From Lepidodermella squamata (lineage: Eukaryota > Animalia > Gastrotricha): 64,000 bases of DNA. Location: NCBI GenBank assembly GCA_047495785.1, contig JBLDXI010000001.1:1922001-1986000 (forward strand), written 5' to 3'. Made by a program: the position numbers and the translations under genes. The notes beneath the pieces are model-generated. The model was not told where the DNA came from, searched no databases, and saw nothing but the letters and a program-made list of their open reading frames with translations. Shown here one piece after another: positions 213 to 30,559 of the stretch. The first letter of the stretch is position 1; every line of letters starts with the position of its first letter.

Positions 213-503
213 ATGGCGAAGGAAAGATCGTTAGCGAAGCTCGATGAAATGCAGTCTAGCTTATTCCGTCTAATTCAAAAGTCAGGTTTGGATGATACGA
301 TTCGTTCTTTTGCCGTCGAGCAGGTGAAGGCGATCAAATACTTGCGCGAGCTCATCGATCGGGAGTGGCCGGATGCTGCTAAGATTGCTGGCGGCTACAA
401 CTTCGAAATGACGCCTGAAAATTCCTGCCCCATTTGCCTGAAAACTATCTCACGGAAACGCGACCTGAAGCGGCACATTGCCACGGTTCATACACGTAAA
501 TAA
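213..503 (+). CDS. Mini zinc-finger protein (helical N-module + 1 C2H2)
   Basis: Intronless 96-aa ORF; finger CPICLKTISRKRDLKRHIATVH; N-terminus resembles the next gene (MAK..., EQVKAIKYLRELI..W.D, YNFE...NSCPIC). Confidence 0.8.
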   Translation: MAKERSLAKLDEMQSSLFRLIQKSGLDDTIRSFAVEQVKAIKYLRELIDREWPDAAKIAGGYNFEMTPENSCPICLKTISRKRDLKRHIATVHTRK

Positions 504-732
504 ATTTGGGACCATACTCGGGGTGGAAGTCAATTTTCTTAAGTATTGTTGAATGGAGTACGCTGAATTTTTCATGGAAAATGATTGCAATTTCATCTCT
601 TTTCGTAAATAAATCTATAATCGTAAATGAATGAAAATTTCGAACTTGCTGATTTCAGTTTCATTTTTAATATGGCGACATGATTGGAGGGTTTCAAATT
701 TTTTAGACTTTAAAGAGTGGCTAAATCCCTCA

Positions 733-1199
733 ATGGCGAAAGCAAAGTGCTTGAAATTAGTAGAATCGATGAGATCTTCCATGACGAATTTGATGATCGA
801 ATCTGAACTGAAGGAACCCGACATGCGATGTCCGCACGAACCAGCCATAACGAAGCAAGTCGAAATGCTCAAACAGCTTGAACACGAAATTTCGGCGAAT
901 TGGGCTGATCCAACTGTTCCTAAAACGAAACGTAACCACGCTTTTCCAGGGGTAAAGAAATGGTGTTGCATCTTCATTTCAATTTGTTAGTAGTAGAAAC
1001 TGTTTCCTACGCTTTTGAGAACTTGGCTGAAAACGTTTGTCCGGTCTGCGGTCTTGAAATGAAGAACAAATTGGTCGTGAAGGGACACATGGAGGCTCGT
1101 CACAATCCGAATCCGAAAAAGTTCCAATGCGACAAATGCGAAAAGTTCTATTTGTTTTCTGGAAGCTTGTCTAATCACAAAAAGAGCGCTCATCAGTGA
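733..1199 (+). CDS. Mini zinc-finger protein (helical N-module + 2 C2H2)
   Basis: ATG 733; phase-1 intron 932-990 joins ORFs 631..990 and 960..1199; fingers CPVC...HMEARH and CDKC...HKKSAH. Confidence 0.8.
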
Positions 1200-1280
1200 C
1201 GACTTATCGATTATATTATTTATCTAGCTGTTCTCCCGATTATTTTTAGATTCTCTATTTAATCTAAGGCAAAGTGAACA

Positions 1281-1996
1281 ATGTCAGGTAAGAAAAATCT
1301 AATTTATTAGGGTTGGATGTAGCATTTGTTATAGGCGATGAGCTGAATCGTGACGAAACAGCCCTGCAGGCTATCGATGATATCGGGCAGGGCTGCCTTG
1401 GAATAATGGAAAGCCTCTCCGCAATCGAATCAGGCCTAGAATCATCGATTCAAAGGCGCCTTATCCTCGAAACCCTCACCTCTCAGCTCATGAAAGTTGA
1501 GTACCTGAAATCCTACATAACTCGTAATTCGTTATTATAATTTCTGCTCTTGAATTTTTTGTTCCTTTTATCAGATGTGATGGGTCGTAAGTCAGCAACT
1601 GGTAAACTTATTCACAACTTGACAAACAAGGTTTTGACGAATGGCGTTGTGAAATCGAATCGCGGCCGGAAACCTAAGCTAATATTGCCCGCGAATTTAC
1701 CTCTGGCTCCGTTACCTCCTCTAAGTGAATCTTCAACAAAATCCCATAACCCAACTCCGAATCCGTCTGTTGTCCCGTCGGTGGAAGTTATAACGATAGA
1801 CGATGATGTGACTAGCAGCAGTACTCCGACTTCGAAAGCTTCGTCATCGGTGAAGTCAAGTGGAACTAGCTTAGTCTCATCAAATAGTGCCACTCAGTCT
1901 TATCCGACGGTATTTGCCTGCCGATTATGCCCTTATTTCTATTGCTCGAAGAAGGATTACGCGCAGCACGTTGAAATTGCCCATGCAGGTGGATAA
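1281..1996 (+). CDS. Zinc-finger protein with helical module, AT-hook-like RGRKPK, SIM-like VEVITIDDD, 1 C2H2
   Basis: Introns 1288-1334 and 1524-1574 (GT-AG, phase 1) join ORFs 1313 and 1550 in frame; finger CRLC...HVEIAH. Confidence 0.8.
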
Positions 1997-2098
1997 ATTG
2001 GTAATTGGTGATGTCTTTGTTCCGTAGTAAATTCATCTGTTTCTCACGGGAAAAGGATCTGATTCTTGGGAAATTTTAGGTAGAGCATTATCAAATTG

Positions 2099-2613
2099 AT
2101 GACTGATTTTAAGCCCATCAGCAAGAAATCGAAGATTCTCGGGATATCTCACGAGATCGAAAGCAGCAACATCAGTTTATGGAACATGTTCGAAGTGCCT
2201 GGTAAGAAGAATGTCCTGGAAGTTCGTGGCTTTTTAATCACGCAAGCCGAACAAATTCGAGCTCTTCGAGAGCAAGTTGAAGCTTTGGAAGACTATGATT
2301 TCCGCATTGGTTAGCAAACTTTCCATTTTACTGATCCTAATTTTCAAAAAATAAATTCTTAGAGAATCCGTTCCTATGCAAAGTTGAGACTCCCGAAGAT
2401 GACGACGTGTGCCTGATAGTCGACCCTCCGACTTTACCAGCTAAAAATTCCAGTGTCACCCCGGTAAAGCCAGCACCCATCCCGGTCAACACACCTACTC
2501 CGGTCAAGTCTCCTACCCTAGCTTTTCCGACGAAAAAACGGTGCGAATTCTGTCCGGCGACCTACTCGGACCCGTCCACGCTTCAGAAGCATGTCGCCCG
2601 TGTTCACGCTTAA
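2099..2613 (+). CDS. Mini zinc-finger protein (helical module, SIM-like DDDVCLIVD, 1 C2H2)
   Basis: Intron 2310-2362 joins ORFs 2096 and 2407; finger CEFC...HVARVH. Confidence 0.8.
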
Positions 2614-2757
2614 AACAAAAACTTCGTTTTCGAAGATTGATTTCTAATTTATAATTTTGCCCTGATTTTGCTCTAAAATATCGTGGAAATCCCTTAATTT
2701 TTTTCTAGCTAGAAGCTGAAAACTGAATAATTTTTCTAATAATCGAAAATTTGAAAC

Positions 2758-3267
2758 ATGAGCGGAGAAAGTAATTTTCGGTCCCAATTTTCGATGACGT
2801 TCCGAAATTCTCGTTTTTCAGAGCTGGTGAAAAGTTCCCAGGTATTGCAGGAATATGCTGGTTTGATTTCGATTTGCAAGTCGCTGAGCAAATACTTGAG
2901 AGAGGTTGCACATGACCCTAACGCTGTGGAACGCGCCGCTGAGAATTTCGCAAGGAAACTGTCTCCTCACGCCCAACTCATCGAACGATGCCGCAAAGGA
3001 TCTTCCCTACGAAAACACCATCAGGATTCAATTTCGAAGGTTGCTAAATCCGTCAGTGAAACCGAGCGTAGTTCGTCGATGGAATGCGCCAAGTGCCCGA
3101 TTTGCGACAAGGTACTGATGAAACGCAACATGCGCGATCATCTGGCTATGCACGAAGCTGACCCGCCGAAATTCGTCTGCAACAGGTGTCAACAGGTCTT
3201 CCGCCGGCGTCGAAGTCATCTCAAACATTCGGTCAAATGTAACGCTCTGATGGAGCTTGACGATTAA
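2758..3267 (+). CDS. Zinc-finger protein (C2H2 + C2HC)
   Basis: 169-aa ORF; CPIC...HLAMH, then CNRC...HSVKC. Confidence 0.8.
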   Translation: MSGESNFRSQFSMTFRNSRFSELVKSSQVLQEYAGLISICKSLSKYLREVAHDPNAVERAAENFARKLSPHAQLIERCRKGSSLRKHHQDSISKVAKSVSETERSSSMECAKCPICDKVLMKRNMRDHLAMHEADPPKFVCNRCQQVFRRRRSHLKHSVKCNALMELDD

Positions 3268-3328: not shown

Positions 3329-3843
3329 ATGGCTGAAGGTCGACATTCTAGCAAGCAAATATTGAGGATGCTGGACCTTTTGGAGGTCGAGTCAAAGACT
3401 CCGATTTCGCTCCGCCCTCCAATTGTCCAGCACTATTTGGGTAGAGCTTGAGACATTTTAGACCAAAAATAATTGTGTTTTTGATAGTATTAAAGGAAGA
3501 ACGAGATGCGAAACTTGCTTTGAAAAATGCGAAGGTCGAAGCCCAGAATGAGGACGTTACTGATTTGCCAGAAATTGATGACGACTGGTTTTTCGAATCA
3601 GAAAGATTGCCTGCTACCCGCAACCTCCGACTTCCACCCCCGAAGCGCTACCATCCGTGTATTCACTGTACGAACTCGTATCGTTTCCCTTGGCAGGTGA
3701 AACTTCACCAGGAAGAAAAACACGATTTGTGGAGCTTGCTGTTCAGCCTTGACTGCGGAATGAGTTATGATTTCTTGAAGAAAGTTGACCGAAAACGACG
3801 ACGAGCCCCTTCTCCCATTCCTATCTATTCAGTGAACTGGTAA
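3329..3843 (+). CDS. Mini zinc-finger protein (1 C2H2)
   Basis: ATG 3329; intron 3441-3487 joins to the ORF 3448 frame; finger CIHC...HQEEKH. Confidence 0.75.
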
Positions 3844-3882: not shown

Positions 3883-4340
3883 ATGGGATCGAACCCTGCT
3901 GTCGAATTCACTGACCTAGTTTCCCAGCTGCGGAAGATGAATTCCAACATGAATGAGCAGCTATCAAGTAAAATTTCGAAGCGATTTTACTGAATAATTT
4001 ACCCTGTAATCTAGAGTATCTAGCTGCTGCGCCGGTTTTCAGCGCTTTCACCGAGTATCTATCCTGTGAACTCGAAGTGATCAACAAGATGGAAGTAACT
4101 CATGGTATAGTCGCCTCTAAACTTGTCACGTTATTGGACAACGTGAATAAGCTGGAGGCGGGGAAGGCCAAGCCTGTGTTAACCGCGAAACAAGCTGTAC
4201 CGAACCCCGCTGTTAAGGAGGAGCCATCTGAAAAGATCCCCTGTGAACTGTGTCATAGAGAGTTTTCTAGCAAAGAAACGTTGAAAAAGCATGTTAACAG
4301 ACTGCATGCTGAACTCGAATTCCAGCCAACTTACATTTGA
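3883..4340 (+). CDS. Mini zinc-finger protein (helical module + 1 C2H2)
   Basis: ATG 3883; intron 3968-4014; finger CELC...HVNRLH; SUMO consensus VKEE. Confidence 0.78.
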
Positions 4341-4381: not shown

Positions 4382-4693
4382 ATGTCATCATCTAACGCCC
4401 ATTACGAGAAAAGGATTGCTGAACTCGAAGCTGCTAATTCCGCGTTGAAAATTGAGGTTGAGCAATTACGTAAAAAAATCGGATCTTCTGGCGATTCGCA
4501 TTACGCTTTTGCTTCCACGGCTGCCCTGCCGCCCAACGTTTGCCCCATTTGCAATGTTGCTGCTTCGAGTGCGTACAGCCTGAAGAGCCACATGTTCCTA
4601 CACGATCCCGTTCCACGATTTTCTTGCAAGAAATGTGGTAAGAAGAGCCGCCAGCCTCAAGGTCATCGAGCTCACGAACGTAGCTGTAAATGA
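4382..4693 (+). CDS. Coiled-coil + 2 zinc-finger mini-protein
   Basis: Heptad repeat IAELEAANSALKIEVEQLRKKI; CPIC...HMFLH-DPVPRFS-CKKC...HERSC. Confidence 0.85.
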   Translation: MSSSNAHYEKRIAELEAANSALKIEVEQLRKKIGSSGDSHYAFASTAALPPNVCPICNVAASSAYSLKSHMFLHDPVPRFSCKKCGKKSRQPQGHRAHERSCK

Positions 4694-4820: not shown

Positions 4821-5135
4821 ATGAATCCTGAAATTGAGAACTTACGGAGGGAGAATTTCGAACTGAAGGCAATCATCGAAAGGTTGAAAACAGAAAACAG
4901 CGCTCTTCTCGCCAAGTTGGGTTCAACGACTAATTCGGAGACTTATTCGTTCGCTCAGCCTCCCAGCTTGCCGGCTAACACGTGTCCGATTTGCAGTGAA
5001 AAGCTTGGAAGTGCCCCCAGTTTGAGAGACCACATGTTTCGGCATGACGCTGTGCCGCGATTTTCCTGTGATGACTGCGGTGTGGCTTTTCGCCAGGTTC
5101 AAGGATTAAATAGACACCGCCGCAACAAGCATTAG
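4821..5135 (+). CDS. Coiled-coil + 2 zinc-finger mini-protein (paralogue of 4382)
   Basis: Heptads IENLRRENFELKAIIERLKTENSALLAKL; CPIC...HMFRH-DAVPRFS-CDDC...HRRNKH. Confidence 0.85.
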   Translation: MNPEIENLRRENFELKAIIERLKTENSALLAKLGSTTNSETYSFAQPPSLPANTCPICSEKLGSAPSLRDHMFRHDAVPRFSCDDCGVAFRQVQGLNRHRRNKH

Positions 5136-5201: not shown

Positions 5202-5522
5202 ATGACCTTGCCTGAAGATCGTATATTAAACCTTGAAGTATTGCTCTGTCAACAATCGACAAGAATTCGTGACCTGGAGAACAAAATTAGCTCCATATTG
5301 AATGATAACGAAAGATTCATGTCAAAAATCATTGTTCAAGTCGAATGGGCTGTTAGCGAGATCGAAATTCTCTCGAAGCGAATTAATGCCATTCGCCAGA
5401 TCAGTGAGAAGGTTTGATGGTTATGTCACATTGTCCCTCTCATATTTGTCAATAATTTATTTTAGGAGGTCTTGTTATCTTTGTTGCCAGATAAGGAGGA
5501 AATGCTATTTTCGTTTCGATGA
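5202..5522 (+). CDS. Small coiled-coil protein, no finger
   Basis: Heptad pattern; phase-0 intron 5412-5465 adds EVLLSLLPDKEEMLFSFR*. Confidence 0.6.
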
Positions 5523-5824: not shown

Positions 5825-6132
5825 ATGAGCTTGTTGCAGTCTACTGATATTCGGTACGAGATAACAATCATGCGATTGAAGCAGCAGAATGCGAAACTCG
5901 AAGGTCAGGTAGCCGCTCTGGAGCAGCGGTTGGCGGACGCCTCCGCTGTTTTCGATCGATTAGCAGCCATTTTAGCCAACGTCTTTGAGGTAGATCAAGT
6001 GCAAGATGAAGTAAGTCCTAGCTATTTATTCATTTATTCTTGACATTTTGTATTATAATTTCCAAGGTGAAGATCGAAAAAGAAGATTTGCGAAAAGCTG
6101 CGATGCGTGAATTGCCCAAGGACCTCGAGTAA
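5825..6132 (+). CDS. Small coiled-coil protein, no finger
   Basis: LKQQNAKLEGQVAALEQRL; intron 6011-6066 (gtaagt...ccaag); last exon VKIEKEDLRK...DLE*. Confidence 0.65.
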
Positions 6133-6345: not shown

Positions 6346-7622
6346 TCACATGGTAATGTTTATGAAAACAATGATGTAGATCGTCAAGGATCCTAATCCA
6401 GTAAGAATGGCGAATGCCAGATCGATCAGGCGGATGAGTTCCATACGGAGTAGTTTCTTGTAGTGCCAGCTTAGCGTGACGTCTACTACTTTCCTGAAGT
6501 CGGACCATTGAGATAGCAGATTTGAAACTAAGGCATAAAGAGTGAAGACCACTGAAATAACAAAATGGCTCGAAACGAAAACGAGAGCATTAGGAATCTG
6601 GCTAGAGCTTGGAATGAGGCTTCCTACGATCGACTGATAGACGGAAAAAGCGAGAACAACTGTCACGCAAAATGCTGGTCGGTCAGGGACATCCGGCTGA
6701 AGCAGAAGGGCCCCGAACAGGAGACTCAGCAGGCAGAAACATGGCAAAAATATGTTGATGAGGTGCAGACTGGACCGGCGTCTGATTACAAAGTAGAACA
6801 CAGCTCTGTGGTAAGTTTTGTTGGGAGCATTGGCGTATTGAACTGGTAGAAAGTTCGAGCCCGATTCTACCAGGCTCCAGTCGTTCACTTCGCTCATGAA
6901 AGGATAATCTACGTCGTCTTCGGTGACGGCTAGCTCGACCGATGTCAGCACGTTGTGCCTTGTATTGTACCATGTTTCTAGCTGGACAGAACAGTTTTGG
7001 ACATCATATGGAAATTTTTCCAAGCTGAAAAATATGCATTAAACTCCATATTTTATCGAAATTTTGAACTCTAGTCTTACTCTAATGGGCAGTACGAGGT
7101 GAAAAAGCCCACTGTCCTAAGCAGGACCTGGCCATCGCTGTAAAAGCGGGTGAATTGTTGACCCGTATAGAGGTTTTGCATTAGCATTGAGTCGGCTGAA
7201 TTAATGTGCTCCATAGGTGGCTGATACGTGTTTGAAATCGGCACCAAGAAGGAGGGTATGTCGTTCCAGTCCGATGTGTTCCATCTTACGCAAGGGTGGT
7301 TCCATCGCAGATTGAATTCTGATGCTAGAGAAAACGTCTCTTCCTGCTCGTTCAAGTTGAGTAAACGAAGCGGAATGAAGGATATTTCAATTGACATTGG
7401 CTCGCTTGCATTGGTCGGCCTGTCGAGCTCGTAGATACCGCATTTGCTTGCAAAGTGGTATCTCAACTAAGGAAAGAAAAATCAACCGGGATTAGGAAGC
7501 TAGTACTGACAATTTTCCCTCACCCTTCCTTCCGGCGGTATGTAGTTTGTCTCGCCTTGAGTCGAAGTTGCCATGATGACTGCAGTCATTAAGATGAAAA
7601 ATCCAAGCGTCACAGAGCTCAT
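6346..7622 (-). CDS. Cys-loop ligand-gated ion channel subunit, nAChR-like non-alpha (copy 1)
   Basis: Signal peptide exon MSSVTLGFF...YIPPEGR; Cys-loop YCPL-x-LEKFPYDVQNC; four TM helices; 3 exons. Confidence 0.92.
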
Positions 7623-7781
7623 TTTTGCTTTTCAATGCTGCCTTGCAGCTTTGATAGCTATGAGCTGGTGTTCGTGGAAAATTATTTCAACTCTCTGGTT
7701 TCCGCTTTCATAGATTTTCGAAGCAATATTCTTGAGCGAAATCAAATAAATTCCATAAATATATCGAATGTAATATCCCTA

Positions 7782-7819
7782 CACGTGAGTCCTCACGTAA
7801 CTGACGTCAGCGTGACGCA
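7782..7819. promoter_or_regulatory. Cluster of ACGT-core sites (E-box CACGTG, palindromic CRE CTGACGTCAG) upstream of LGIC copy 1
   Basis: CACGTG 7782-7787; inverted repeat acgtgag/ctcacgt 7783-7798; ctgacgtcag 7801-7810; ~160-200 bp upstream of the ATG. Confidence 0.4.
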
Positions 7820-8541
7820 ATTATTGTTATTCGCCTATGTTCCATTGCCATCGCAGTTGAAAAATTGAAGGTGGTGTGAGAAGAAAGTAGAAAGGAAAAA
7901 AGGAGAATGACTAACTTGACCTCGCTCCAATGCGCCTTCCCGAGAAGTAGCGAGTGAAAATTATGAGAAATTTTAACTTAATAGGGAAATATTTATTTAA
8001 AAGCTTTGGCATTGGCTTTGGAACTGGCTCGAGCCATTCGGTATTTATTACTGTCTACTATGACTTGCAATAAGGAAGTAAGCCCCGGCTCCCCGGCTCT
8101 TTCCTATTTCCAATGCGTCACAACAGACCTAGTCTTAAACCATAGCGATTTAAGACGAAATCACACAATTTTCGAGTTGTATACGCATTTTTCCGCTCAG
8201 GTTCCAGCCAAATGTTATGAAACTTCGAAGAGAAGTGCTCTGAATGCCGGGAATTATTTCGTCCGAATCTTGCGCATTTCTAGCTTTTAAAATGGGAAGT
8301 CAAATTGTTCATGGCGAATGGTCTTGTGACTTGTGACCTCGTTGGCTGCGTCACGGAGCCTTTATTTCAGTACCTTCAAAGTCTTAGCCTGTTAAATAGT
8401 TGTTATTTCATCAGTTAGTTGTCCTCTTTTTTTAAAGAAATATATGCACAAGCAATTGCCAAATGTTTACAACCAGTGTTTACAATCAGGAATGCTTGCT
8501 TGATGGAGGAATGGTAGAGAGAAGTCAAATCGGATTTCGTG

Positions 8542-9805
8542 TCAAATCATAAGATTGTTGAAAATAACTGCATAAAGAGCAATGGATCCCAGGCTAGCCA
8601 GCGTAGAGAATGCGATATCTGGAAGTCGAATAAGCTGCATAGGAAGCGGCAGCTTGATACGACAAAACGGCAGTACTTCAATGGTCTCTCGGTATCTTGG
8701 CCTCAGTGATAGTTCATTCGAGATCAAGGCATAGAGCGTGAAGAAAACTGCGATAACTAGGTGGCTTGCGACAAAAATCAACGCATCGGGTACCTGACTC
8801 GAGTTCGGAATCATTTCTCCAACTATTGACTGATAAACTGAAAATGCGAGGACAACCGTAACGCAGAAGGCTGGCCGGTCTGGCGCATCTGGCTCCATCA
8901 GCATTGCCCCAAAAAGCAGGGTCAATAAGCAGAAGCAGGGTGCGAAAATGTTGATGAGGTGCAAACTCGGGCGACGTTTGATTATGTAGTAAAACGCTAC
9001 TCTATGATAGGTTTTATTCGGACTGGTTGCGTACTCGACGTTGAGAAAGTTGTAACTCGACTTGATCAGAGTCCAGTCGTTCACGTCACTCATGAATGGG
9101 TAGGCTGCATCGTCCTCAACGACCTGATATTGAACCGAATTGAATATCATGTTCCGTGTATTGCGCCATGTTTCGAGTTGTATTGAACAATTTTGAACGT
9201 CGAATGGGAATTTCTCTAAGCTGAGAAGCATAGGAGATAACTTTTGTCAATTGCTTTATTCAGCGATGATGCTTACTTCAATGGGCAGTACGAGGCGAAA
9301 AAGCCAGCTGTACGTAATATAACAGAGCCATCGCTGTAGAAACGAGTGAACGGCTGTTCTGCATACAAATTCTGGAGTAGCATCGGATCCGCGGAATTGA
9401 CGTGCTCGATCGGAGGCTGATAGGTTTGCTCCACTGGTATCACAAATGATTGTATACCGTCCCAGTCTGAAGTGTTCCACTGCACACAAGGATGCTGCCA
9501 GCGTAGGTAAAGCTCGGAGGTGACCGCGAAAGTTTCCTTCTGCTCATTTAGATTGTAGAATCGCATTGGCAGGAAGGTTATGTCTATAGCTGTAGGTTCG
9601 CTTGAATTCGTTGGGCGATCCAACTCGTAAATGCCGCATTTTGTTCCGAAGTGATACCTGACCTGCCAATTTATTAAGATCCGTTCAATTTTCGAAGTAC
9701 GGGAAACGTGCATTTGTCTCTTACCCGACCTTCGGGGGGCATGTACGATAATCCTGCGAGGCTGAACGAAAGTACCAAAATCAAAGGCAGTATCGTCAAG
9801 TTCAT
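8542..9805 (-). CDS. Cys-loop ligand-gated ion channel subunit (copy 2)
   Basis: MNLTILPLIL...YMPPEGR; Cys-loop ...FPFDVQNC; M2 DRPAFCVTVVLAFSVY identical to copy 1; same intron positions. Confidence 0.92.
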
Positions 9806-10180
9806 TGATTCAACAGCTTGCGGATAAAATTGGACAGAATCTGAAATCAAGGTTGAACGCTCCAGCTTTATTAATATCATTTTTTCGTGGTTCCCGGATA
9901 TTAACGCAACGAAGCCTGCGCAAAAATATATCTCTATTGAATGATTGTTCAATATTTTATTGATTTTTGATACTGTTCTTCAATATGGATGAGATGTAGA
10001 TGTTCCTCGAATTATCTTTTCAAAATCGGATAATTTAATGCACCGAGGCCTAGAAATCTCGCTATGGAGCCCTTGATATGAACAAGATTTACAAGATCGT
10101 CATCGCAAAAACTGGTCAATGTGACTTGGCTGAGTTAAAAGCAGGACTTTCTTTTTCTGAAGGTCGAAGCTCGAAGCAAA

Positions 10181-11617
10181 TTATCGACCAGACATTGAAC
10201 AAACAAAACCTAAGCTCGTGCCATTGCCAGTTGAAATGTATATTACGAGGCGTTTGAAGATAACGGCGTAGATGATTATTGATCCTAAACTGGCCATGAT
10301 CGAAAAAGCCACATCTATCAAACGTACGAGTTCCAAGTTGATCCGTGGATGATCATTATGTTCCAATGTATCCGCGTCCGTTCCGCGCCCAGGTTCATTC
10401 AGCCAAATTATTTCAAATTGAACTGGTTTCTTTAATTCAGATTTATGGGACAGCACATTGGCCATCAGAGCATGAAGCGTAAATAGGACAGCAATCACAA
10501 AATGGCTCGATACGAAAATCACCGCATCAGGAATCTGGCTGGAACTTGGAATCAAGTTTCCAATAATCGAAAGATAGACGGAAAAGGCGAGAACCACTGT
10601 AACGCAAAATGCCGGCCGATCAGGAACCTTTGGTTGCAAAAGCAGCGACCCGAAAAGAAGAATTAACATCAGGAAACATGGTAGGAAAATGTTGATCAGG
10701 TGTAAACTCGCCCGGCGTCTGATTACGAAGTGAAAAACTGCTCTGTGGTATGTTTCGTTCGGAGAATCGGCGTATTGTATTGGTAAGAAATTTGCATACG
10801 AATTTAAGAGGCTCCAATCGTTTACCTCGCTGATAAAGGAACCAATCTCGTCCTCTAGGAATTCTATCTTAACTGATGTATATATGATGTACTTCGTGCT
10901 GTACCAGGTCTCCAGCTGGGGAATTATGAATTTGTAAAAGCTCTGAAAAATCTCGGCGAAAAGCTTATACCTGTATAGAACAGTTTTGGACATCGAACGG
11001 GAACTTTTCCAAGCTTAACATTGAAAATTGTTAGATTATTCTGTAAACGGGATCGTTTGAATCTTACTCAAGTGGGCAGTACGAGGTGAAAAGCCCAGCT
11101 GTGTGCAGGAGAACAGAACCTTCGCTGCTGAAGCGAGTGAATTGCCGATTAGGGTAAAAGTTCTGCATCAAGATCGAGTCGGCAGAGTTGATGTGCTTAA
11201 TCGCTGGTTGATAGGTTTGTGACGTTGGTACTGTGAAAGAGGATATCCCGTTCCAATCTGAATCTTTCCATTTAACGCAAGGGTGGCGCCATCGGAGATT
11301 TAGATCCGATGCTACAGTGAAGGTCTCCCGCTTCTCGTTCAAGTTGTGGAAATTAAACGGAGTCAAGGTTATTTCGACCCGAATTGGCTCGCTGGAATTG
11401 GCTGGGCGGTCGAGCTCGTAGATTCCGCATTCACGGGCGAAATGGTTCCTCAACTGTGAAAACGGAAAATAGTTTCATTCGCTCGACGGAAAAGCTGATC
11501 TCGTACCCTTCCTTCTGGTGGTATGTAATCTGACTGGCTATCGGTCGAAAATACGTTCGAAGTCTCTTCGGCGAAATAAATCAGAGTAATTACTATGAAT
11601 GATTCGAGCGGTTTCAT
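10181..11617 (-). CDS. Cys-loop ligand-gated ion channel subunit (copy 3)
   Basis: MKPLESF...YIPPEGR; same architecture as copies 1 and 2, plus an extra intron 10916-10970. Confidence 0.9.
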
Positions 11618-11991
11618 TTTTGATTCTCCATGCCTCCGAAGTTCTGATACTAGGTAGTTTAACAGTAGTCATATAGATAGCTCTAGCAAATTGTTTTGTC
11701 TTCGATTCGGAGCACGAGTTGAGGAAATTGGAGTCTGGCCAATGTTTAATCGAATGTTATATTATTATTAACGTAGCCTTATTTTTTCGGCCCATCGGAT
11801 ATTAGTGTTTCGGTCAAAAACAAGCTGATATTTCGCGCTGAGTTGAAAATAAGCTATCCTCAATTGAGTACACTCGAATGCGAGTTCGGCTTGTACTAAC
11901 TAAGACTAATGTTTTGACTTCTGGTTATGACTTTGATAGGTCCCGTGTTAAATTTTTACAAAGAAATAGACGCATCTCCGATCCTTCTGGC

Positions 11992-19978: not shown

Positions 19979-21123
19979 ATGGCTGGGCCAATTTCATCGA
20001 ACGAGTCGATTGATGACCTTTTGATGACATTTCTTCTTGAAATTCGAGATGTCTCCTCGTTTGTCAATGATTTGATTTACGGTCTGAATTTCCATTTCAT
20101 TTTCGCTATTTGAACTATAATCGAAGTTTTTCAGGTTTGACTCCGGTTGCTACACGAGGACAAATTGCTGTTGTTCATAGTCACTACTTGCTGCTTGTCG
20201 GCCTTATTCATCAGGCTATCGGCATTTTGCGGGGTAAATCTGGGAATAACGACCCCGAAGCTGAAAACAAAGCCGTTTCGCTGGAAGTTCATCGCTTTTT
20301 CGAGGAGTACCCATCGACTACATCGACGGATGAGTCATCATTCATTCCGATTCCATCTCCGCTGGGCGCTGAATTGATGGAGCAATCAGAAACCGACTAC
20401 GGCTTGGAAGTGGCGATTGTTGAAAATATCAGCGATCTAGTACCTTCAACTGCGAATTTTGCACCAGAAGTTCCCGTGCATTTGGTCCCTATCGCAATTC
20501 CTGAATCTGATGACCCGATGCCGGCTGATAATTTGAAGATCGGCAAACACATCAGTCGAGCTCGAACTCGCTCCGCTACAGGCTCTAAGAAACGATCCAA
20601 GTCTAACATTCATAAATCAGGTGAGGAATCGAATTTTAGTTTTTCGACTGGGAAAATCGACTTTTTTCATAGAAGACAAACGATCCAAATCTGTCACGAA
20701 ACCGCATGGAGATAAGAAAAAGCGAGTCATGAAGCGTAAATCGACGGGCGAATCTATGTCGGCTGTTTCAGCTAAATTCCGAATTGTTTCCGATGATATC
20801 TCTCATAGAAGGGCTGCTAAACCCGGGCCTCTCTTAGTAAAATCTGGCAAGGCCTCGCATGGAGCAGAGACCAATGGAATAAGTGAGTTTTTCTAAAAAA
20901 TTTCCGTTTTTATTTGAGCAGTTTTTCGCAATTTTTACAAGTTGGCCTGACGTGTCCGGTTTGTCGAAAAGTGTACTCGAAAAAAGCAACTTTGAGAGTT
21001 CATATGAAGATTCACGACTCTAATTTTCAGCCATATCAATGCCGATTTTGTTCGAAAACGTTTAACTTCTACGCTAACCTGTATTCTCACGTGAAACGAT
21101 TCCACATTATAAATTTGAAATGA
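19979..21123 (+). CDS. Helical-module + 2 C2H2 protein
   Basis: Introns 20082-20134, 20621-20672 and 20883-20941 give an open frame; fingers CPVC...HMKIH and CRFC...HVKRFH. Confidence 0.78.
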
Positions 21124-21163: not shown

Positions 21164-22245
21164 ATGCTTCGAAAAGTGCCGTCGAGAGGTTGCTTAAGGC
21201 GCGAGAAAGAAGATTTCACTTTTATCAAGGCGAAAAGTCTGGAAGTTCTAAAAAGTGAGTGAGTTTTTGGTTCGAATTGAATTCCCATATGATGTATTCA
21301 ATCATCCAGGTTTTTCCTCCTCGATTTCCCGGCGATATGACCAGGTAGGGTCGTTGATTAGTATCGTACAACTTTGCGACAGGCGAAAAAGCGAGCTCGA
21401 AGGCCCACGAGCTGCTCTTAAAGGAAGCAGTTCAGGATATGAAATGAAAAAAGAAATTGCCGATATTCGTAGTATTGATCTGGAGATAATAGACATTTCG
21501 GATGAGTCGGAAGGAGAACATGAAAGAAACCTAGTCGCTGACGCGGCGGTTCACCCGGAAAGCACTGATCCCAGCGAAGAGGACCTTACTACTCATCACG
21601 TAGAACTTGGAGGAGCTGTTGTTGACGGTATTCGAATTCCTCAAATTTTGCACGAGAAATTAGGGATTACTTAGTTTTAGCAAATTTGCAGCCGGCGGTT
21701 ATCAAAAAAACAAAACGTTCTCGGGGCCGCCCCAGAAATGTCATGGCCGAAACGAAAAAGCGACGTCGCCGATATTCTAAAACTAGTCCGAAACGTCGCC
21801 TCTCTGCAAAAGCTGGTGAGTAATTTCATCGCGACCCTTCTCGAATTTTACCTCGATATGTCTAGAATTGGTGGTCTTTCCAGGCGAACAAATTCGTAAT
21901 GTCGTAGTCAAACCAGAAAACGCCGAAAAAAGCAACAACGACGAAAAGGAGAAAGGTTATAATATTCCACTTCATAGCGATTCTCTGAGTTCAACTGATT
22001 CTATAATAGGAAATGCGAAAATTTCCCATTTCAAGGAATTTGGGCCGAACAAGGTTCAGTGCAATAATTGCGGGCGTGTGATATCAAAAAAGGCGAAGGG
22101 TCATCATCTTATTCGTCATGGCCTATCCCGGAATAATGCGATAGAATGCGATAAGTGTGGATCAGTCCTCGGGTCGTTGTCTTCCTGGTACCGGCATTGC
22201 AAGATAGGATGCCAAAAGCCTGACAATTCAACATCTCTTTCTTAA
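21164..22245 (+). CDS. Zinc-finger protein with SIM-like motif, AT-hook (RGRPR) and 2 fingers
   Basis: Multi-exon; LEIIDISDESE; KRSRGRPRN at ~21715-21740; CNNC...HLIRH and CDKC...HCKIGC. Confidence 0.75.
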
Positions 22246-22697: not shown

Positions 22698-23731
22698 ATG
22701 CTTCGAAGGGGGGTTTCTAGAGGTCCCTTGACGGTAAGACTCGAAGAAAAAGATTTGAATTATATAAGAGCGGAATGCCTAAAGGTGCTGGGAAGTGAGT
22801 TTTATTACTTCGCCTATGTTCCCATTTGATTTATTCAATGCCGCAGCTTTTTCGGCCTCGATTACCCGTCAGTACGAGTATGTCGGGTCGTTGGTCAGTG
22901 TCGTTCAACTTTGCGACAGGCTCCACCGCGAGTTCGAAGAGCGACGAGCTGCTCTTGAAGATAGCAGCTCAGAAAATGAAATGAATGAAGGGCGCGAAGA
23001 CGCCCCAGCTAACACTGCCGAGATTTCTGAGGAATCTGAACCGGAAGGCGCAAGCGAAGTAAGTCTTGTTAGTGATGCTGTTGGTCAAGCCGATCCTAGC
23101 GAAGAGGACCTTACTGCCCATGTTGAACTTGGAGGAGCTGGTATTCGGATTTTTTGCGTCTGAAATGAGACATCAGCGATTTGTGTTTGGCAGCTTATGA
23201 GCCTGTTGTTATCAAGAAGCCGGTGGCGAAACCTTCTAAGGGCCGCCGCAGAGCAGTTATGGTGAAAAAGCGACGTCGTCTTAATCCTAAGACAATTCCG
23301 AAACGTCGCCGCATTGCAAATGCTGGTAATTTTCCGAAATTCCGAATTAATGAAATTCATTCTTGCTAGTCTTTTCAGTCGAAAAAGTTGATAATGTCGT
23401 AGTCAATCCAGAAAGCACTGAAATTCCACGTCTAGATGACGCAATCAAGGCTGAGAGCGGAAAGCAGACAGGTTTAATCATTCGATGTGATTACAAATCT
23501 TTGACTGTTCCCAACTCCATAACAGGAAGCGAGAACATGTCCCATTTCAAGGAAGTTGGGCCGAAAAAAGTGCAGTGCAACATTTGCGGGCTTGCGATTG
23601 GTTCAAGGTCGAAGGGTTCTCACCTGATTCGACACGGCCCTGCGCGGAAGTACACATGCGATAGTTGCGGGAAACAGTTCGGTTCGCCGTCATCGTGGCA
23701 ACGTCATTGCCAGAAAGGCTGTCCGGCCTGA
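22698..23731 (+). CDS. Zinc-finger protein, tandem paralogue of the 21164 gene
   Basis: Shared blocks VGSL.S.VQLCDR, DPSEEDLT, SHFKE.GP.KVQCN.CG; same intron positions. Confidence 0.78.
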
Positions 23732-23857: not shown

Positions 23858-24770
23858 ATGCCTGATTACATCACTCCTCGGATCAGCGAGGAAGAGGTAC
23901 ATTTCATCCGGAATAACGCGCTTAAGGTATTGAAAAGTAAGTCTTTCGGTGGGTTTCATACGAAAATACGAAGTTGAGTTTCTTCAGGTTTTTCGAGTAA
24001 TATGGTCAAAAATTACAATCAAATCGGGTCGCTAGTCCGGGCTGTGGAACGCTGTGACTCAATATTGGCGAAATTCGCGAAGAAAAATGTTTCCTTCAAC
24101 GAAGAGGTTGAAGTATCGACTTTTGAACCAGTCGAGCAGTCTCTCGTTGATATAACTGATGATGACGATCCTAAAATCAACATGTTGTTGATACCTAAAA
24201 TTCGCAAGCGGGTGCGTAATCGGAGAGCTGTAAATCGCAAATTAGTGGAATCAGGTTAGTTGTAACTTATCGGAAATCTTAATTCTTACCCACCGCTGAT
24301 CATTCAGATGATGAGCTGTTATCCCGTCACTGGAATAATCCCGAAATGGTTGTCGTAGGTCCCGCTTTCAGCCTAAAATCTACCCGATCTAAACCAGGTA
24401 ATTTTTAGGTGGAATTTTTGTTCCATTGGCTGGCTTTGGCTTCGTATAAGTCAATTGATGAATGGCTAAAATGTCAGAATTTGCGAATGAAAATTGATTT
24501 GAAACTCGTTTTACCCAGCATCTGCTCAACTTGAAACGTTCACTACATTTAAATGTCATTTAAGGTGCGCCCCAGGTTGAGGAAAAAGTTGCCTCCTCGG
24601 CAATAATTGGATGTAATATCTGCGGTCGAATTCTGTCGTCTCGGACTAGCCTGTTCAATCACATGAGGCTACACGACAAGACCCCGCGTTTCAAGTGTCG
24701 TAGCTGTGGCAAGGCCTATTATCAGAATCAGTCGTTGCGCGTTCACAACCGGAGACCTTGCAGCAGCTGA
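23858..24770 (+). CDS. Zinc-finger protein (related N-module, SIM-like LVDITDDDD, 2 fingers)
   Basis: NYNQIGSLVRAVERCD; last exon (not in ORF track) CNICGRILSSRTSLFNHMRLHDKTPRFKCRSCGKAYYQNQSLRVHNRRPC. Confidence 0.72.
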
Positions 24771-24875: not shown

Positions 24876-25233
24876 ATGTCAGAAGTATTTTCTACCGAAT
24901 CAAACGTTTGTGAGTTCCTTCATTTTGCGTTGATATTGTTGACCAAACCTCGTCTTTTTCAGGGACGGGTAATTTCTGCCACCTTGAGATAGTCATTTTA
25001 TGTGTGTAACTTCAGAGGTCATGCGAATTCTCCGTGAAAACAATGAAGCCCTTCTACAACTTTCGAATTTGATGGAATTTCACAAGACTGTTTTTCAAGG
25101 TCTGATCGACCATTTTCAGAATCAAACCCCACGTGCTCATGTAAACCACGTGGATTCAGCTCCCGAAGTTCCGGAAGTCGTTCTCATCGAAGAAAGTGAC
25201 GAAAATAGTGATGATTGTGTCATAGTAGAGTAG
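24876..25233 (+). CDS. Small helical protein ending in tandem SIM-like motifs; includes a 6-nt microexon
   Basis: Introns 24910-24962 and 24969-25015; C-terminus EVVLIEESDENSDDCVIVE*. Confidence 0.6.
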
Positions 25234-25279
25234 ATTAAAAATGACTTTTTCAACTTTATTTCGGTAGTCTTTCAAATTT

Positions 25280-25752
25280 ATGAGTTCGAGGAGTGATTTA
25301 GATGGAATCTCCCCATCAATCGATGATTCGCTGATCAACGCTATTCCTACTCAAATTTGGTCGGCTATGAAACGCGATATCCGCGAATCGAAATCCGCTG
25401 ATTGGTTAAACTTGCCTACCGAAACGAGGCATCCTAGTAAATCCGACTCGCTAATACAATCGCGAAGCTTGCTCAGGCTAGTTATCCGCCGGTCTTCGTC
25501 GAATTACATGGTCACGCCTGTGGTAATCAGTTGGCTCTTTCTCATTCAAATGTCTACGAGAATTTTATTTAGCGCCGTTCGATTGTCAAAAGGCTGGCAA
25601 GTGAGCAGTCGTTCGTTGTGGAGAAGCCTTCTTGTGAAACCTATCATGAAAGTTACGCTCGCCAAATTTCGAAGGCGATAGGAAACGTACCCTCTCTTTT
25701 GAAATTCTGGTCGCGAAAAAAGGCGTCGAAATCTCCCCGCAGACCGTCTTAG
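25280..25752 (+). CDS. Uncharacterised basic protein
   Basis: ATG 12 nt after an AG; phase-0 intron 25523-25572 gives RRSIVKRL...SPRRPS*. Confidence 0.45.
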
Positions 25753-25845: not shown

Positions 25846-26211
25846 ATGCCCAGCGAACTGGAGAAACTCACTCTAGTTCAGAGATTGGAAAGAATGGCTC
25901 TGATTGTGAAATTTGGCTTGCCAAATTTTCAGAAGCCGGATTCGCCCTCTGTCAAACCTGCCGAAAAGAAATTGCCGAAGTTGGAGCCATCGGAAACTTG
26001 CGAAAACTGCCCGCCTGCTAAGCCCGATACGAAAATCGATGCATCCGACAAATTTAAATGTAAAATTTGCGGCCGGGTTTTGTCGTCTCGCGGCTCAATG
26101 TTTCATCACATGCGAATTCACGATGCTGTGCCCAAGTACAAGTGCAACATTTGCAATCGACCATTTCACCAATTTTCGTCTCTTTATACTCACAAGAAAA
26201 GATGCAAATAA
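25846..26211 (+). CDS. Mini zinc-finger protein (C2H2 + C2HC)
   Basis: CKIC...HMRIH-DAVPKYK-CNIC...HKKRC. Confidence 0.85.
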   Translation: MPSELEKLTLVQRLERMALIVKFGLPNFQKPDSPSVKPAEKKLPKLEPSETCENCPPAKPDTKIDASDKFKCKICGRVLSSRGSMFHHMRIHDAVPKYKCNICNRPFHQFSSLYTHKKRCK

Positions 26212-26250: not shown

Positions 26251-26445
26251 ATGGATTTGTCGATTTTTACGAAGTTACAGTCGTATTTGGAGTCTTTCGA
26301 TAAAGACGAAGAGCACTGGTACGGCTGTACGATTTGCAAGAAGTCATTCAGCAACCAAAGTATCTTGAACGAGCACAAGAAGCAAGTTCATGCGACAAGC
26401 CCATGCAGCAGTTACTCGTGTTCACCTTCTTTATCAGGTTGGTAA
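26251..26445 (+). CDS. Micro zinc-finger protein (1 C2H2)
   Basis: 64 aa; CTICKKSFSNQSILNEHKKQVH; starts 39 nt after the previous stop. Confidence 0.7.
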   Translation: MDLSIFTKLQSYLESFDKDEEHWYGCTICKKSFSNQSILNEHKKQVHATSPCSSYSCSPSLSGW

Positions 26446-27148: not shown

Positions 27149-27706
27149 ATGTCAGGTTTTCTATCGAAGTTCTTTTTGTTCGTCTCGAATAATTCGTAAT
27201 TTTTATTTCAAGTTGAAGCTGATTTCAACATTTCGGAGGCCCTCGATGAAAACTTGCCTCATTTCGTCCTGGCCGTACCAGCCAGTCGCTGCCTGATTTG
27301 CTTCGCCAAATTTCGCGTCAAAAGCCTGCTAGTCCAGCACCAGCTCACAGCCCACGGCCCGAAATCAGCCACCAAGTCGAAACAACAACCAAAGAAGGCG
27401 TCGAATTTTCACCAGAAGGTCGAAAAAATCGATGCGCCGATTGTGACGTATCGCTGTTTGCTGTGTTCGAAAGATCTAAGTGACCGGCGCAGTTTGATTC
27501 GCCACGAAAACGGGGTTCATCGACCGAACGATCGGCCGAAATGCACGCGATGCGGTAAAAATTTCTACGACTTGTCCACGCTACGCCGACACGTCCGAAA
27601 GGCGCTGTGCGCTAAATTCAAATGCCTCAAGTGCTCGCAGTTTTTCGATGACGAGCTGTCGCTGGCTAAACACAAGAAACGTGGCCACAGTCAAGGAAAT
27701 CGATGA
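27149..27706 (+). CDS. C2H2 zinc-finger protein (4 fingers)
   Basis: ATG 27149 and intron 27156-27212 restore the frame of ORF 27254. Confidence 0.8.
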
Positions 27707-27884: not shown

Positions 27885-28705
27885 ATGTACTCGCAGTGGA
27901 ATTACGGAAAATCTTCGCTGTTTTCTGGCGAAATCATTTCGATTGAAAATGTGAATGAGCTCGAGATGGGTTCTTCATGGCTGCTGGCTGATACCCCGCC
28001 GAATTCAACGCCCTCCCGAGACTCGGTTGAACCCGACTTTGTTTTTCCTGCCCTCATCAGCTCTATGGTCGGTTTCAGGCCCGCCCCGCCTAGTGACGAT
28101 GAGATGGTCGATATTGAGGTGGAGTCAAGTACCAAGACCAATAGCCTGAAAAAGTTGAGCAAGAGAAAAAAGCGGGACTACTATATCACACGAGTGTCTT
28201 CCTCTATCAAAATATGCAATAAAAAGCAGGAGAAGAAGAAGAAGAAGAAACCTCAAAAAATCGTGCCAAGGTCTAGAGATACTCGCAGTAGATCGGCGAA
28301 GAAACCAGCTTCTTCCAAGCCTAAGAACGCTGCTAAAATGAGGAAGCCTAGGAATTATCGAATACCGCAAGATGCCGCCTATCGACTGGAACAGGTAGAA
28401 GGGGCGGTCAGTTTGGTGGCGCATTTCATTATTTCTGACCCACAGGAATTCTTCCGGCATAACAAAACACCCGCTCACAATATCAAGAGTAAATTAGCGA
28501 AAGAAATGGGCGTGAAAGTCAATTTTGTAAGACTGAATTTTATCCACCTTAATTTTTCTAACGAAATGTTCAATTTTATCAGATTCGCTACTGGTACGTT
28601 GAAAATCGATCTCGCCTCAACCGGGCTAAGCGGGCTGCGGACCCGAACGGTTGCCCGAGTTCTATCGAAACAGTAAGCCGACCCGGTGAATGTCTCGTTG
28701 CTTGA
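27885..28705 (+). CDS. Divergent homeodomain protein
   Basis: Removing introns 28394-28445 and 28527-28582 gives RKPRNYRIPQDAAYRLEQEFFRHNKTPAHNIKSKLAKEMGVKVNFIRYWYVENRSRLNR. Confidence 0.75.
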
Positions 28706-28776
28706 AAAGAAGATATTTAATCTATTACGAAAAATGACTGTTTACCATGAAAATTAGATATTATTTCACTATTGCT

Positions 28777-29550
28777 ATGGAATTGATCTTGGATGATATT
28801 CGAAAACGGAAGGCTGGTATTCGCTCTGTTTTACCCACCATGCCCCTATTGAGGTGTTACAAACAGCTTCAACACGTGAACAGCGTTCTGTATTTGAAGC
28901 TTCAATCCGGTGAGTCATTTTCTCCTTGAATTGTTATTTCAATATTTTTTTATTTTCAAGTGGTTGACCTTGAGGGCAATCGGCTGCCAGAGTACACTAA
29001 TGCATTGAATTACCTATCAATGCAATCCGCCTTATTGTCCCAGCTAAAATACCGAGTCCCAGCGTTGTGTGAAGCGAAGAAACCGCGCCGTAGTAAATCC
29101 AACAACTCCGCGCCACCTATAGCCCAAGAAGTGGTGGTCGAATCAACCCCGGCCCCCACCCAGAGCCGCAGCTACATGGCCGATGCCATGTGCCCCACGT
29201 GCTTCAAAACATTCGCCCGCCGCGCCGATTCAATCCGCCACCAATTCACAGCTCATTGCGAAAAATTGACTCAAATCACGTGCCCGGAATGTCCTGGTCT
29301 GAAAATTCTTAAAAGCGTGCGAACTTATGAGATTCACATGCTTAAAATGCATGGAGGCACCAGTCAGGATTCGACCCAGGCCAAGTGCCCGGTGTGTAGC
29401 CTGGTTTTCCGCCGGAAAGCTAGTGTTACAATTCACATTCGGAATGCTCATAGGATGGTTACGGGTTCGAAATCCCAGTACCAGGCGGATAAGGGTTGCG
29501 ACTGCAAAAATTGCACATATGTCAGGGCTTTGATTGACGCATCGACTTGA
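28777..29550 (+). CDS. Helical-module + 3 C2H2 protein with terminal CxCxxC
   Basis: One intron ending at 28960; three fingers; tail GCDCKNC. Confidence 0.8.
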
Positions 29551-29594
29551 GTAATAAAAATAAGTTCAGTTTTTATAGAAAAATAATTTCCAAG

Positions 29595-30182
29595 ATGAAT
29601 CCAACAATTTTGAAGATGAAGCAGGTTATCAATTCGCTGATTAGCTTGCTGCAAACACCTGGCGCTGATACTTCGGACACTTATTTGAACCTCTGCATGG
29701 CTAATGTCCTCTACTTTCGCGATCTAGCTGGAGCTCTTGATGACTCATCCGCACCGTCATCATCAGCTTCTTCGCCGCAGATCAATGAACTCTCGACGTT
29801 GTGGCAGGATATTATGGAAAATCCTCGCCCGATTGAGGAAAATTCTGTTGGTGGACAGGCTGCTGAAATGGAAAAATCGGATCCTGAAGAGATGGCTGTT
29901 CGAGAAAGTCGATCTCTTCATGCCGTGGAAAAAGGTAAGAAGGCCGCTAAAACCCGCGTTTCTACTACATCGGATGCTGAGGATTTAGTCGTTCGGGAAA
30001 GTCGATCCCTTCAGGTCATAAAAGAAGCTAAACCAGCAGCTAAGAAGCCCGCTAAAATCCGCAAAGTTTCGAAGAAAAAACCTGTTGATGTTGACAAAAC
30101 TACCTGTAAGGAGTGCAACAAAACTTACGCCCAAGCTGGTGGTCTCAAGTACCACATGCGTGTTAGACACAACAGTCAATAG
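29595..30182 (+). CDS. Helical-module + 1 C2H2 protein with internal repeat
   Basis: LCMANVLYFRDL; VRESRSL repeated twice; CKEC...HMRVRH. Confidence 0.8.
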   Translation: MNPTILKMKQVINSLISLLQTPGADTSDTYLNLCMANVLYFRDLAGALDDSSAPSSSASSPQINELSTLWQDIMENPRPIEENSVGGQAAEMEKSDPEEMAVRESRSLHAVEKGKKAAKTRVSTTSDAEDLVVRESRSLQVIKEAKPAAKKPAKIRKVSKKKPVDVDKTTCKECNKTYAQAGGLKYHMRVRHNSQ

Positions 30183-30247
30183 ACAAATTGATTTTTTTCC
30201 GATAAAAAATTTTCTGATTTTTTTCGATTATTTTAGACGTAATTTTA

Positions 30248-30559
30248 ATGCAGTCAATTAACGCGAATAACATTCGAGACGTCGCTGATTCGTTGCTTCA
30301 CGCACTCGAATCCCCGGCTCGGCCGTTATCTTGCGAATTTTTCAGCCTTTGCCTAGCTCATGCCTTCTACCTGCGAGATTTAGTCGCTCGTTACGAAGAG
30401 CAAGAAATGCCTCCGATTTTGTTCAACGAGTCTATCCCTCTGCCGGAGAATTTGTTGAAGCAACAAGATTCTGCGACTAGTTTCTTCTGCCCACACTGCC
30501 CGACGAAATTCAATCGCAAATCTGACAGAACGCAGCACATAAAGCGGCATCATAAGTAG
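30248..30559 (+). CDS. Helical-module + 1 C2H2 mini-protein
   Basis: LCLAHAFYLRDL (homologous to the previous gene); CPHC...HIKRHH. Confidence 0.82.
   Translation: MQSINANNIRDVADSLLHALESPARPLSCEFFSLCLAHAFYLRDLVARYEEQEMPPILFNESIPLPENLLKQQDSATSFFCPHCPTKFNRKSDRTQHIKRHHK

Follow-up and report, generated by a model that had tools for sequence, protein, structure and literature searches.

Whether small genes lying head to tail with almost no space between them are transcribed one by one or together is the question raised by a 64,000-nucleotide (nt) stretch of the genome of the gastrotrich Lepidodermella squamata (assembly GCA_047495785.1, contig JBLDXI010000001.1, positions 1,922,001 to 1,986,000 of the forward strand), hereafter the window. 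Between positions 213 and 30559, it carries about 32 small, intron-poor genes, most of them with C2H2 zinc fingers. These genes are best read as an old head-to-tail cluster that is specific to its lineage, in an animal genome of small introns. Their products are probably small nuclear proteins. A promoter and a 3' end cannot fit into the 39–66 nt that separate the tightest neighbors, so co-transcription in several polycistronic runs is the most economical reading of these junctions and, judged by their architecture, a fairly probable one.

Organization of the cluster

The 32 genes modeled in 213–30559 are all on the plus strand and fall into three blocks of 11 (G1–G11), three (M1–M3), and 18 (H1–H18) members. 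The models were built manually with the help of a home-made dynamic-programming gene finder, trained on the clearest open reading frames (ORFs) and unreliable outside the array; the 5' ends are unsure for two models, H2 and H14. The sequence-only reading of this DNA had counted about 33 genes as 11, 3, and 19; the strand, the location, and the first two blocks were borne out, and the third block came to 18 genes rather than 19. The introns, both verified and modeled, are mostly 43–64 nt long with GTA or GTG at one border and a T-rich TAG or CAG at the other, and the GC content of the array region is approximately 0.42–0.43. The genes are as follows (aa, amino acids).

213..503, plus strand: G1, 96 aa, one exon; helical N-terminus and one C2H2 finger (Pfam zf-C2H2, E = 1.8e-4)
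733..1199, plus strand: G2, 135 aa, exons 733–931 and 991–1199; two fingers; G1 paralogue; an acceptor-type AG ends at 706
1281..1996, plus strand: G3, 205 aa, exons 1281–1287, 1335–1523, and 1575–1996; one finger
2099..2613, plus strand: G4, 153 aa, exons 2099–2309 and 2363–2613; one finger
2758..3267, plus strand: G5, 169 aa, one exon; helical hairpin and two-finger module; predicted acceptor AG at 2707–2708
3329..3843, plus strand: G6, 155 aa, exons 3329–3440 and 3488–3843; one finger
3883..4340, plus strand: G7, 136 aa, exons 3883–3967 and 4015–4340; one finger; 39 nt from G6
4382..4693, plus strand: G8, 103 aa, one exon; heptad-like helix (coiled coil judged by eye) and two-finger module; 41 nt from G7
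4821..5135, plus strand: G9, 104 aa, one exon; G8 paralogue (Pfam zf-C2H2, E = 6e-9)
5202..5417, plus strand: G10, 71 aa, an ORF, helical and fingerless; covered by public cDNA over 5175–5572
5825..6132, plus strand: G11, 83 aa, exons 5825–6010 and 6067–6132; helical and fingerless; AATAAA at 6137
11878..12627, plus strand: M1, one exon, six fingers; start at 11878 or 11992
12946..13809, plus strand: M2, 287 aa, one exon, eight fingers (Pfam zf-C2H2_4, E = 4.5e-27)
14050..14715, plus strand: M3, 221 aa, one exon, six fingers; the strongest upstream acceptor of the set, ending at 14038
15567..15836, plus strand: H1, 89 aa, helical and fingerless; possibly the first exon of H2 instead
16393..16826, plus strand: H2, terminal exon with one finger; candidate start ATG at 16015
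17072..17323, plus strand: H3, 65 aa, two exons, helical and fingerless
17542..18213, plus strand: H4, 194 aa, two exons, rich in R, G, and N, fingerless; AATAAA 4 nt past the stop
18263..18852, plus strand: H5, 163 aa, three exons, fingerless; alternative ATG at 18236
18919..19810, plus strand: H6, 226 aa, three exons; fingerless paralogue of the H7 N-terminus
19979..21123, plus strand: H7, 326 aa, four exons; C-terminal two-finger module
21164..22245, plus strand: H8, 307 aa, four exons, two fingers; 40 nt from H7
22698..23731, plus strand: H9, 291 aa, four exons; H8 paralogue
23858..24770, plus strand: H10, 213 aa, four exons; N-terminus like those of H8 and H9; two-finger module
25000..25752, plus strand: H11, about 219 aa, three exons, fingerless; low-confidence model
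25846..26211, plus strand: H12, 121 aa, one exon; two-finger module
26251..26445, plus strand: H13, 64 aa, one finger; 39 nt from H12
27213..27706, plus strand: H14, terminal exon with four fingers
27885..28705, plus strand: H15, 254 aa, two exons, basic runs, fingerless
28777..29550, plus strand: H16, 240 aa, two exons, two or three fingers; AATAAA just past the stop (29553)
29595..30182, plus strand: H17, 195 aa, one exon, helical hairpin and one finger; 44 nt from H16
30248..30559, plus strand: H18, 103 aa, one exon; H17 paralogue and last gene of the array

C2H2 finger motifs, searched for by pattern, number 50 on the plus strand, all within 426–30553; the minus strand of the whole 64 kb has a single chance match. 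Fingers are present in 23 of the 32 genes. The fingerless nine comprise G10, G11, H1, and H3 (short, helical or coiled-coil-looking), H4, H5 (one membrane-span-like hydrophobic stretch near the C-terminus, judged by eye), H6, H11, and H15, so that the label of transcription regulators, earlier given to all, does not describe the whole set. Nor does the word mini suit every member, as several genes at 15.5–25 kb have three or four exons and encode 200–330 aa, and the array is not continuous, its part from 6.3 to 11.5 kb being taken up by three opposite-strand Cys-loop channel genes.

Junctions between neighboring genes

Twenty-nine stop-to-ATG gaps could be measured. Fourteen span 39–102 nt, a same-strand spacing too short for a promoter; ten span 126–245 nt, and the five larger ones are 318, 407, 452, 851, and 5745 nt long. 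The short gaps pointed out earlier are exact at 39 nt (3843/3883 and 26211/26251), 40 nt (21123/21164), 41 nt (4340/4382), and 44 nt (29550/29595). The 22-nt gap reported at 18213/18236 exists as well, but the next in-frame ATG at 18263, which leaves 49 nt, is the likelier start; an AATAAA at 18217 and a TAG acceptor at 18241–18243 lie between that stop and that ATG.

An unpaired, U-rich AG before most start codons had also been proposed, and such acceptors do exist, more often than chance allows. Of 30 start codons, 19 have a T-rich (T/C)AG in the 45 nt upstream, compared with 14% of same-strand non-coding positions (P ~1e-9), an enrichment slightly inflated because the start codons of G2 and H5 were chosen partly with the acceptor positions known, which is to be counted with the objections to co-transcription gathered below. 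The same 30 windows on the mirror strand hold a T-rich AG in only three cases, and AG is the most enriched dinucleotide after the T tract, 4.4-fold compared with at most 2.3-fold for the others.

The acceptors are also placed at a preferred distance from the preceding gene. At seven of 24 junctions (G2/G3, G3/G4, G6/G7, H7/H8, H11/H12, H12/H13, and H16/H17), the first base after the acceptor AG falls 26–31 nt past the upstream stop (for instance, 29 nt at G6/G7 and 26 nt at H12/H13), and none falls at 2–25 or 32–37 nt. With an acceptor so near the stop, the 3' end of the upstream mRNA and the next acceptor must nearly coincide, and the spacing suggests a fixed, minimal 3' untranslated region (UTR) with coupled 3'-end and acceptor signals. 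AATAAA occurs at or just past the stop of H4, H6, and H16, where cleavage would fall near the next acceptor. The 26–31 nt spacing offers a simple sequence handle on the coupling of 3'-end formation and trans-splicing in this lineage.

These junctions can be explained in more than one way. Many neighbors are probably co-transcribed in several polycistronic runs, of which the longest candidate extends from G1 or G2 to G10, and cleavage at each upstream 3' end would be coupled to spliced-leader trans-splicing of the downstream gene, in the manner of tunicates and with almost no intercistronic spacer. Alternatively, the genes could be independent, monocistronic, and extremely compact, with minimal promoters placed inside the upstream neighbor, at its 3' end or in its 3' UTR. 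The T-rich AG would then be no trans-splice site but a core-promoter element, a 3'-end element, or the ordinary acceptor of a short 5'-UTR intron. Separate transcription of this kind has a real chance of being correct, yet it is on the whole unlikely. At ten junctions, the 39–66 nt gap cannot accommodate a promoter in addition to a 3' UTR and its cleavage site, and a 39-nt gap has no donor for a 5'-UTR intron unless the donor lies inside the upstream gene. The enrichment is, moreover, specific to AG after a T tract and does not reflect mere T-richness.

Co-transcription had been claimed for the array as a whole. The architecture of the junctions is indeed operon-like, but a single unit of about 33 genes is not supported by an array that is broken. 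One mega-operon over 213–30559 would account for the presence of all genes of the zinc finger type on one strand and for operon-like junctions over the whole span; it is nevertheless very improbable. The three opposite-strand channel genes interrupt it at 6.3–11.5 kb, gaps of 318, 407, 452, and 851 nt split it further, and the last of these contains AATAAA signals together with a GC-rich segment that includes a run of 16 C. The largest operons in two published surveys have seven genes in Ciona (PMC7986045) and nine in a chaetognath (PMC12460157).

A stronger version of the reading in several runs is more speculative, and we hold it to be doubtful. The run from G1 or G2 to G10 (9–10 genes, 5.2 kb), and perhaps H3–H8 and H15–H18, would be true polycistronic units of regulator-type zinc finger genes, in which the polypyrimidine tract and AG about 28 nt past each stop would serve both as the 3'-end signal and as the next trans-splice site. 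If so, they would be the longest animal operons described so far and would come from a gene class otherwise excluded from operons; the run ending at G10, taken as one unit, would be unusual in length and content.

Expression, transcript ends, and the search for a spliced leader

The genes are real and several are expressed. Assembled cDNA from a 2015 public run was compared with positions 200–6150 of the array; this material is sparse (contigs totaling 118 Mb, in which fold-back joints are numerous) and cannot show 5' ends reliably. Its contigs cover parts of G1 (209–346 and 317–503), G3, G5, G6, G8, G9, and G10 and, thinly, G2 and G4. The 51-nt G3 intron (1524–1574) is spliced out in one contig, the loose end of which before 1575 corresponds to 1513–1523. 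The cDNA of G1 ends at approximately 627 and continues into an untemplated A-run and a SMART-type cDNA adaptor; since this end lies 14 nt past an AATAAA at 608–613, G1 makes its own mRNA with a 124-nt 3' UTR.

This 3' end bears on the suggestion that a few long genes have been mistaken for many, the units being their exons, or else that the ORFs belong to decaying pseudogenes or to a viral insert. The gene finder can join G1 to G2 by a 211-nt intron, and the H1/H2 and H13/H14 boundaries are not settled in the models, both of which would fit long genes. However, G1 ends its own transcript, every unit begins with an in-frame ATG and ends with a stop of its own, and for most adjacent units no in-frame joining is possible; the spliceosomal introns, one of them spliced in cDNA, speak further against a viral insert. 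The units are accordingly separate genes, contrary to the case that would have undone the sequence-only reading, and this alternative is hardly credible.

Several observations weigh against co-transcription with trans-splicing. Most of the tight gaps are without a canonical AATAAA or ATTAAA. No spliced leader was found among the loose ends of the assembled contigs, which are too thin either to show or to exclude one, and no contig clearly bridges two genes. The sole contig that reaches a predicted acceptor, that of G5, stays colinear with genomic sequence over 24 nt or more upstream of that AG; it may represent a precursor, the 3' UTR of G4, a G5 mRNA that is not trans-spliced, or contaminating DNA. 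In addition, a long run of regulator-like genes in an operon would be atypical. Independent transcription of each gene is favored by the missing leader, by the unspliced contig through the G5 acceptor, and by the G1 3' end of its own, as this end (627) and the next acceptor AG (706) are 78 nt apart. Even so, co-transcription in several runs remains the reading preferred here for the tight junctions.

A loose 15-mer before 2699 was considered as a leader and rejected, being a diverged copy (12/15) of the adjacent 2683–2697. Its offset is a 1-nt length polymorphism that is also present in a 2024 public DNA run. Matches at the 12/15 level occur at only four places in 128 kb (both strands); no other copy was found in the window at up to two mismatches, and none was found in the literature. 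A search of the window with Rfam, at gathering cut-offs and at E ≤ 1, gave no spliced-leader RNA or other RNA gene, and no tRNAs were found in the window.

Encoded proteins

In the usual product of the cluster, a linker that is acidic, basic, or both connects a helical N-terminus of 50–100 aa with one or two fingers at the C-terminus; M1–M3 and H14 have four to eight fingers. Among ten proteins tested, Pfam zf-C2H2 or zf-C2H2_4 scored above the curated cut-off in G8, G9, M1, M2, M3, H14, and H16, and a zf-C2H2-type match fell just under it in G1, G5, and H17. By motif length, approximately 39 of the 50 fingers are of the H-x4-H form. An alignment shows a two-finger module, CP(I/V)C...HMxxHDxxP(K/R)FxCxxC...H...C, that is common to G5, G8, G9, H7, H10, and H12, and the inter-finger linkers are of the type HDxxP(K/R)FxC. 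Pfam also touches finger types of ZNF451, ZNF598, JAZ, and zf-met, so DNA binding is not a given. As a set, the proteins do not combine the three or more tandem fingers, the TGEKP-like linkers, and the effector domain of the classical Krueppel-type poly-zinc-finger transcription factors.

The N-terminal module, a two-helix hairpin or a heptad-like helix, is probably an oligomerization module. AlphaFold predicts a two-helix hairpin in H18 (helices 6–21 and 29–53; predicted local distance difference test, pLDDT, 77–90 over residues 1–50) and a less confident hairpin in G5 (helices 19–49 and 54–110; pLDDT 72–81 only over about residues 31–70). A Foldseek search of the H18 model against PDB gave no match at E ≤ 0.001, and its best rows were generic helical-hairpin oligomerization modules. 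In the proteins and exon fragments scanned, Pfam recognized no N-terminal domain, including KRAB, ZAD, SCAN, and BTB.

Matches to these proteins are limited to generic C2H2 fingers, and the proteins may represent a lineage-specific class of small nuclear adaptors. A word-indexed search of 5.8 billion proteins returned no relatives of G9 from a collection that seems to lack the source organism and its close relatives, an exact-protein look-up of G8 in public assemblies gave no record, and an ESM Atlas feature search with the G5 N-terminus gave no usable match. A profile of the two-finger module matched 156,519 of 1.84 billion proteins; the top matches were all giant poly-zinc-finger proteins, which is uninformative on family or taxon.

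Two features of individual proteins were considered and set aside. SUMO-interaction-like motifs occur in seven of 32 proteins compared with 4.2 ± 1.7 in shuffles, which is not significant. A homeodomain in H15 was dropped, as Pfam was blank in the part that could be tested. The H15 C-terminus (...IRYWYVENRSRLNRAK), read across the intron, has a faint likeness to homeodomain helix 3 with one residue extra. Motifs of the SUMO-interaction-like kind, with a hydrophobic core beside an acidic run, are carried by G3 (about 1683–1710), G4 (about 2390–2420), H8, H10, and H11, with VEVITIDDD, LEIIDISDESE, and SLVDITDDDD as examples.

Duplication, age, and selective constraint

Paralogy within the cluster is detectable among neighbors. 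BLAST pairs G1 with G2 (E = 0.002), G8 with G9 (E = 1e-4), H6 with H7 (E = 1.5e-4), H8 with H9 (E = 2e-52), and H17 with H18 (E = 4e-7), and the N-terminus of H10 groups with those of H8 and H9; the paralogue groups by N-terminus are all made up of neighbors. Profile–profile comparison by hhalign between the N-terminal modules of different gene groups gave nothing. The cluster grew by tandem duplication of neighbors (G1/G2, G8/G9, H6/H7, H8/H9/H10, and H17/H18). Tandem duplication produces same-strand order in any case, a point in favor of independently transcribed genes; however, most neighbors are not detectable paralogues, and duplication alone does not explain the uniform packing.

DNA-level repeats are left only in H8/H9/H10, with a period of approximately 1.5 kb, and in the channel genes. 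The youngest pair, H8/H9, has 0.285 non-synonymous (dN) and 0.73 synonymous (dS) substitutions per site, with a dN/dS of 0.39, and dS is saturated or nearly so in the other scorable pairs. With saturation of this degree and only neighbor groups detectable, the cluster is old and heterogeneous rather than a young, fast-evolving family. The 452-nt spacer between H8 and H9 contains, at 22278–22567, degenerate copies (repeat families D8, D10, and D12) of the part of H9/H10 that comprises the 5' exon and intron; these copies are remnants of tandem duplications.

The genes are under strong purifying selection today. The 2024 public DNA run, compared over 200–6150, resolves two haplotypes over 200–3436, one identical to the window and one approximately 3% different (depths of about 52 and 85). 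Of 40 haplotype differences listed, 37 lie in coding models and 33 of these at third codon positions (P = 2.5e-12). The coding differences comprise 31 synonymous and six non-synonymous changes, giving an omega of approximately 0.06 by a rough site count; the synonymous share is 7/10 in G1 and 14/15 in G3. The sole coding indel is 3 nt long (at 2471, in G4), and the other six indels are found in introns or spacers (five) or just past the G2 stop (one). So great an excess of synonymous changes in the predicted frames is a further argument against exons of other genes or decaying ORFs. It also disagrees, together with the dN/dS of the youngest paralogues, with the earlier description of the set as fast-evolving. 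The fast-evolving chromatin toolkit that had been envisaged is thus not supported, and for its role in the germline, meiosis, or silencing of transposable elements, there is no evidence either way. Over 3610–6150, the same run shows a single sequence at a depth of 127, so that heterozygosity shifts abruptly inside the cluster.

Comparison with known operons and zinc finger clusters

On the prevailing view, most genes in animal operons have housekeeping roles. A dense, constrained cluster of small zinc finger genes with operon-type junctions would put this rule to the test. The zim-1, zim-2, zim-3, and him-8 genes of Caenorhabditis elegans are reportedly a four-gene operon with a meiotic role, a description attributed to Phillips and Dernburg in 2006. 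The likeness is an analogy of layout only, namely, several small paralogous proteins whose N-termini diverge and whose C-termini bear two fingers, encoded side by side on one strand; the present cluster is approximately eight times larger and is heterogeneous.

The KRAB-ZNF clusters of mammals and the ZAD-ZnF clusters of insects encode long arrays of H-x3-H fingers with TGEKP linkers and a KRAB or ZAD domain, and their genes have their own promoters and lie kilobases apart. They resemble the present cluster in lineage-specific tandem expansion, same-strand runs, and an N-terminal interaction domain followed by C-terminal fingers, whereas here most proteins carry one or two fingers of the H-x4-H form, and neighboring genes are separated by tens of bases. 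If RNA data were to show ordinary separate promoters, the cluster would be one more lineage-specific tandem zinc finger expansion.

Operons of Ciona have a median intercistronic distance of 1 bp and up to seven genes, and those of Oikopleura are defined by distances of at most 60 bp (PMC7986045). The present cluster shares with Ciona intestinalis and Oikopleura dioica, both tunicates, an arrangement of same-strand genes with almost no spacer, here with the acceptor 26–31 nt past the stop at seven junctions. It differs in that a leader and polycistronic RNA are only presumed, in that the candidate run ending at G10 would be at least as long as the largest operons of the two surveys (PMC7986045; PMC12460157), and in its content of paralogous and non-paralogous small zinc finger genes, which are not housekeeping genes.

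In the chaetognath Paraspadella gotoi, genes less than 250 bp apart were taken as candidate operons, the longest with nine genes, and metabolic and housekeeping functions were over-represented among the operon genes, the association with development and signaling being negative (PMC12460157). The operon spacer of C. elegans is approximately 100 bp long (PMC7986045). Short same-strand spacing and a lone acceptor for each downstream gene are common to these operons and the present cluster, in which the 78-nt spacer of G1/G2 is nematode-like; in contrast, the genes here have the look of nuclear regulators, and many spacers fall far short of 100 nt.

Channel genes and other features of the window

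The interruption between G11 and M1 consists of the following genes.

6346..11453, minus strand: three tandem Cys-loop ligand-gated channel genes (ORFs; Pfam Neur_chan_LBD, E = 1.8e-11 and 4.1e-9 in the middle copy)

Their copies have diverged, with 66–81% DNA identity in the reported repeat families and repeat periods of 2.2 and 1.75 kb. A word-indexed search with one channel-gene exon gave no relatives, again from a collection seemingly without the source organism and its close relatives. In the 851-nt spacer between M3 and H1, the segment at 15150–15420 comprises the run of 16 C together with a block of unusually high GC content, and Rfam is blank there; the block could be the promoter region of the H run or a repeat fragment. 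Beyond the array, the ORFs of the window at 31970–41240 and 51464–63623 are all without zinc fingers. Those at 31970–41240 (minus strand) are cysteine-rich and possibly secreted, and the part at 51464–63623 (plus strand) contains a Sushi-domain ORF and a Ser/Thr-rich, mucin-like ORF of 3831 aa.

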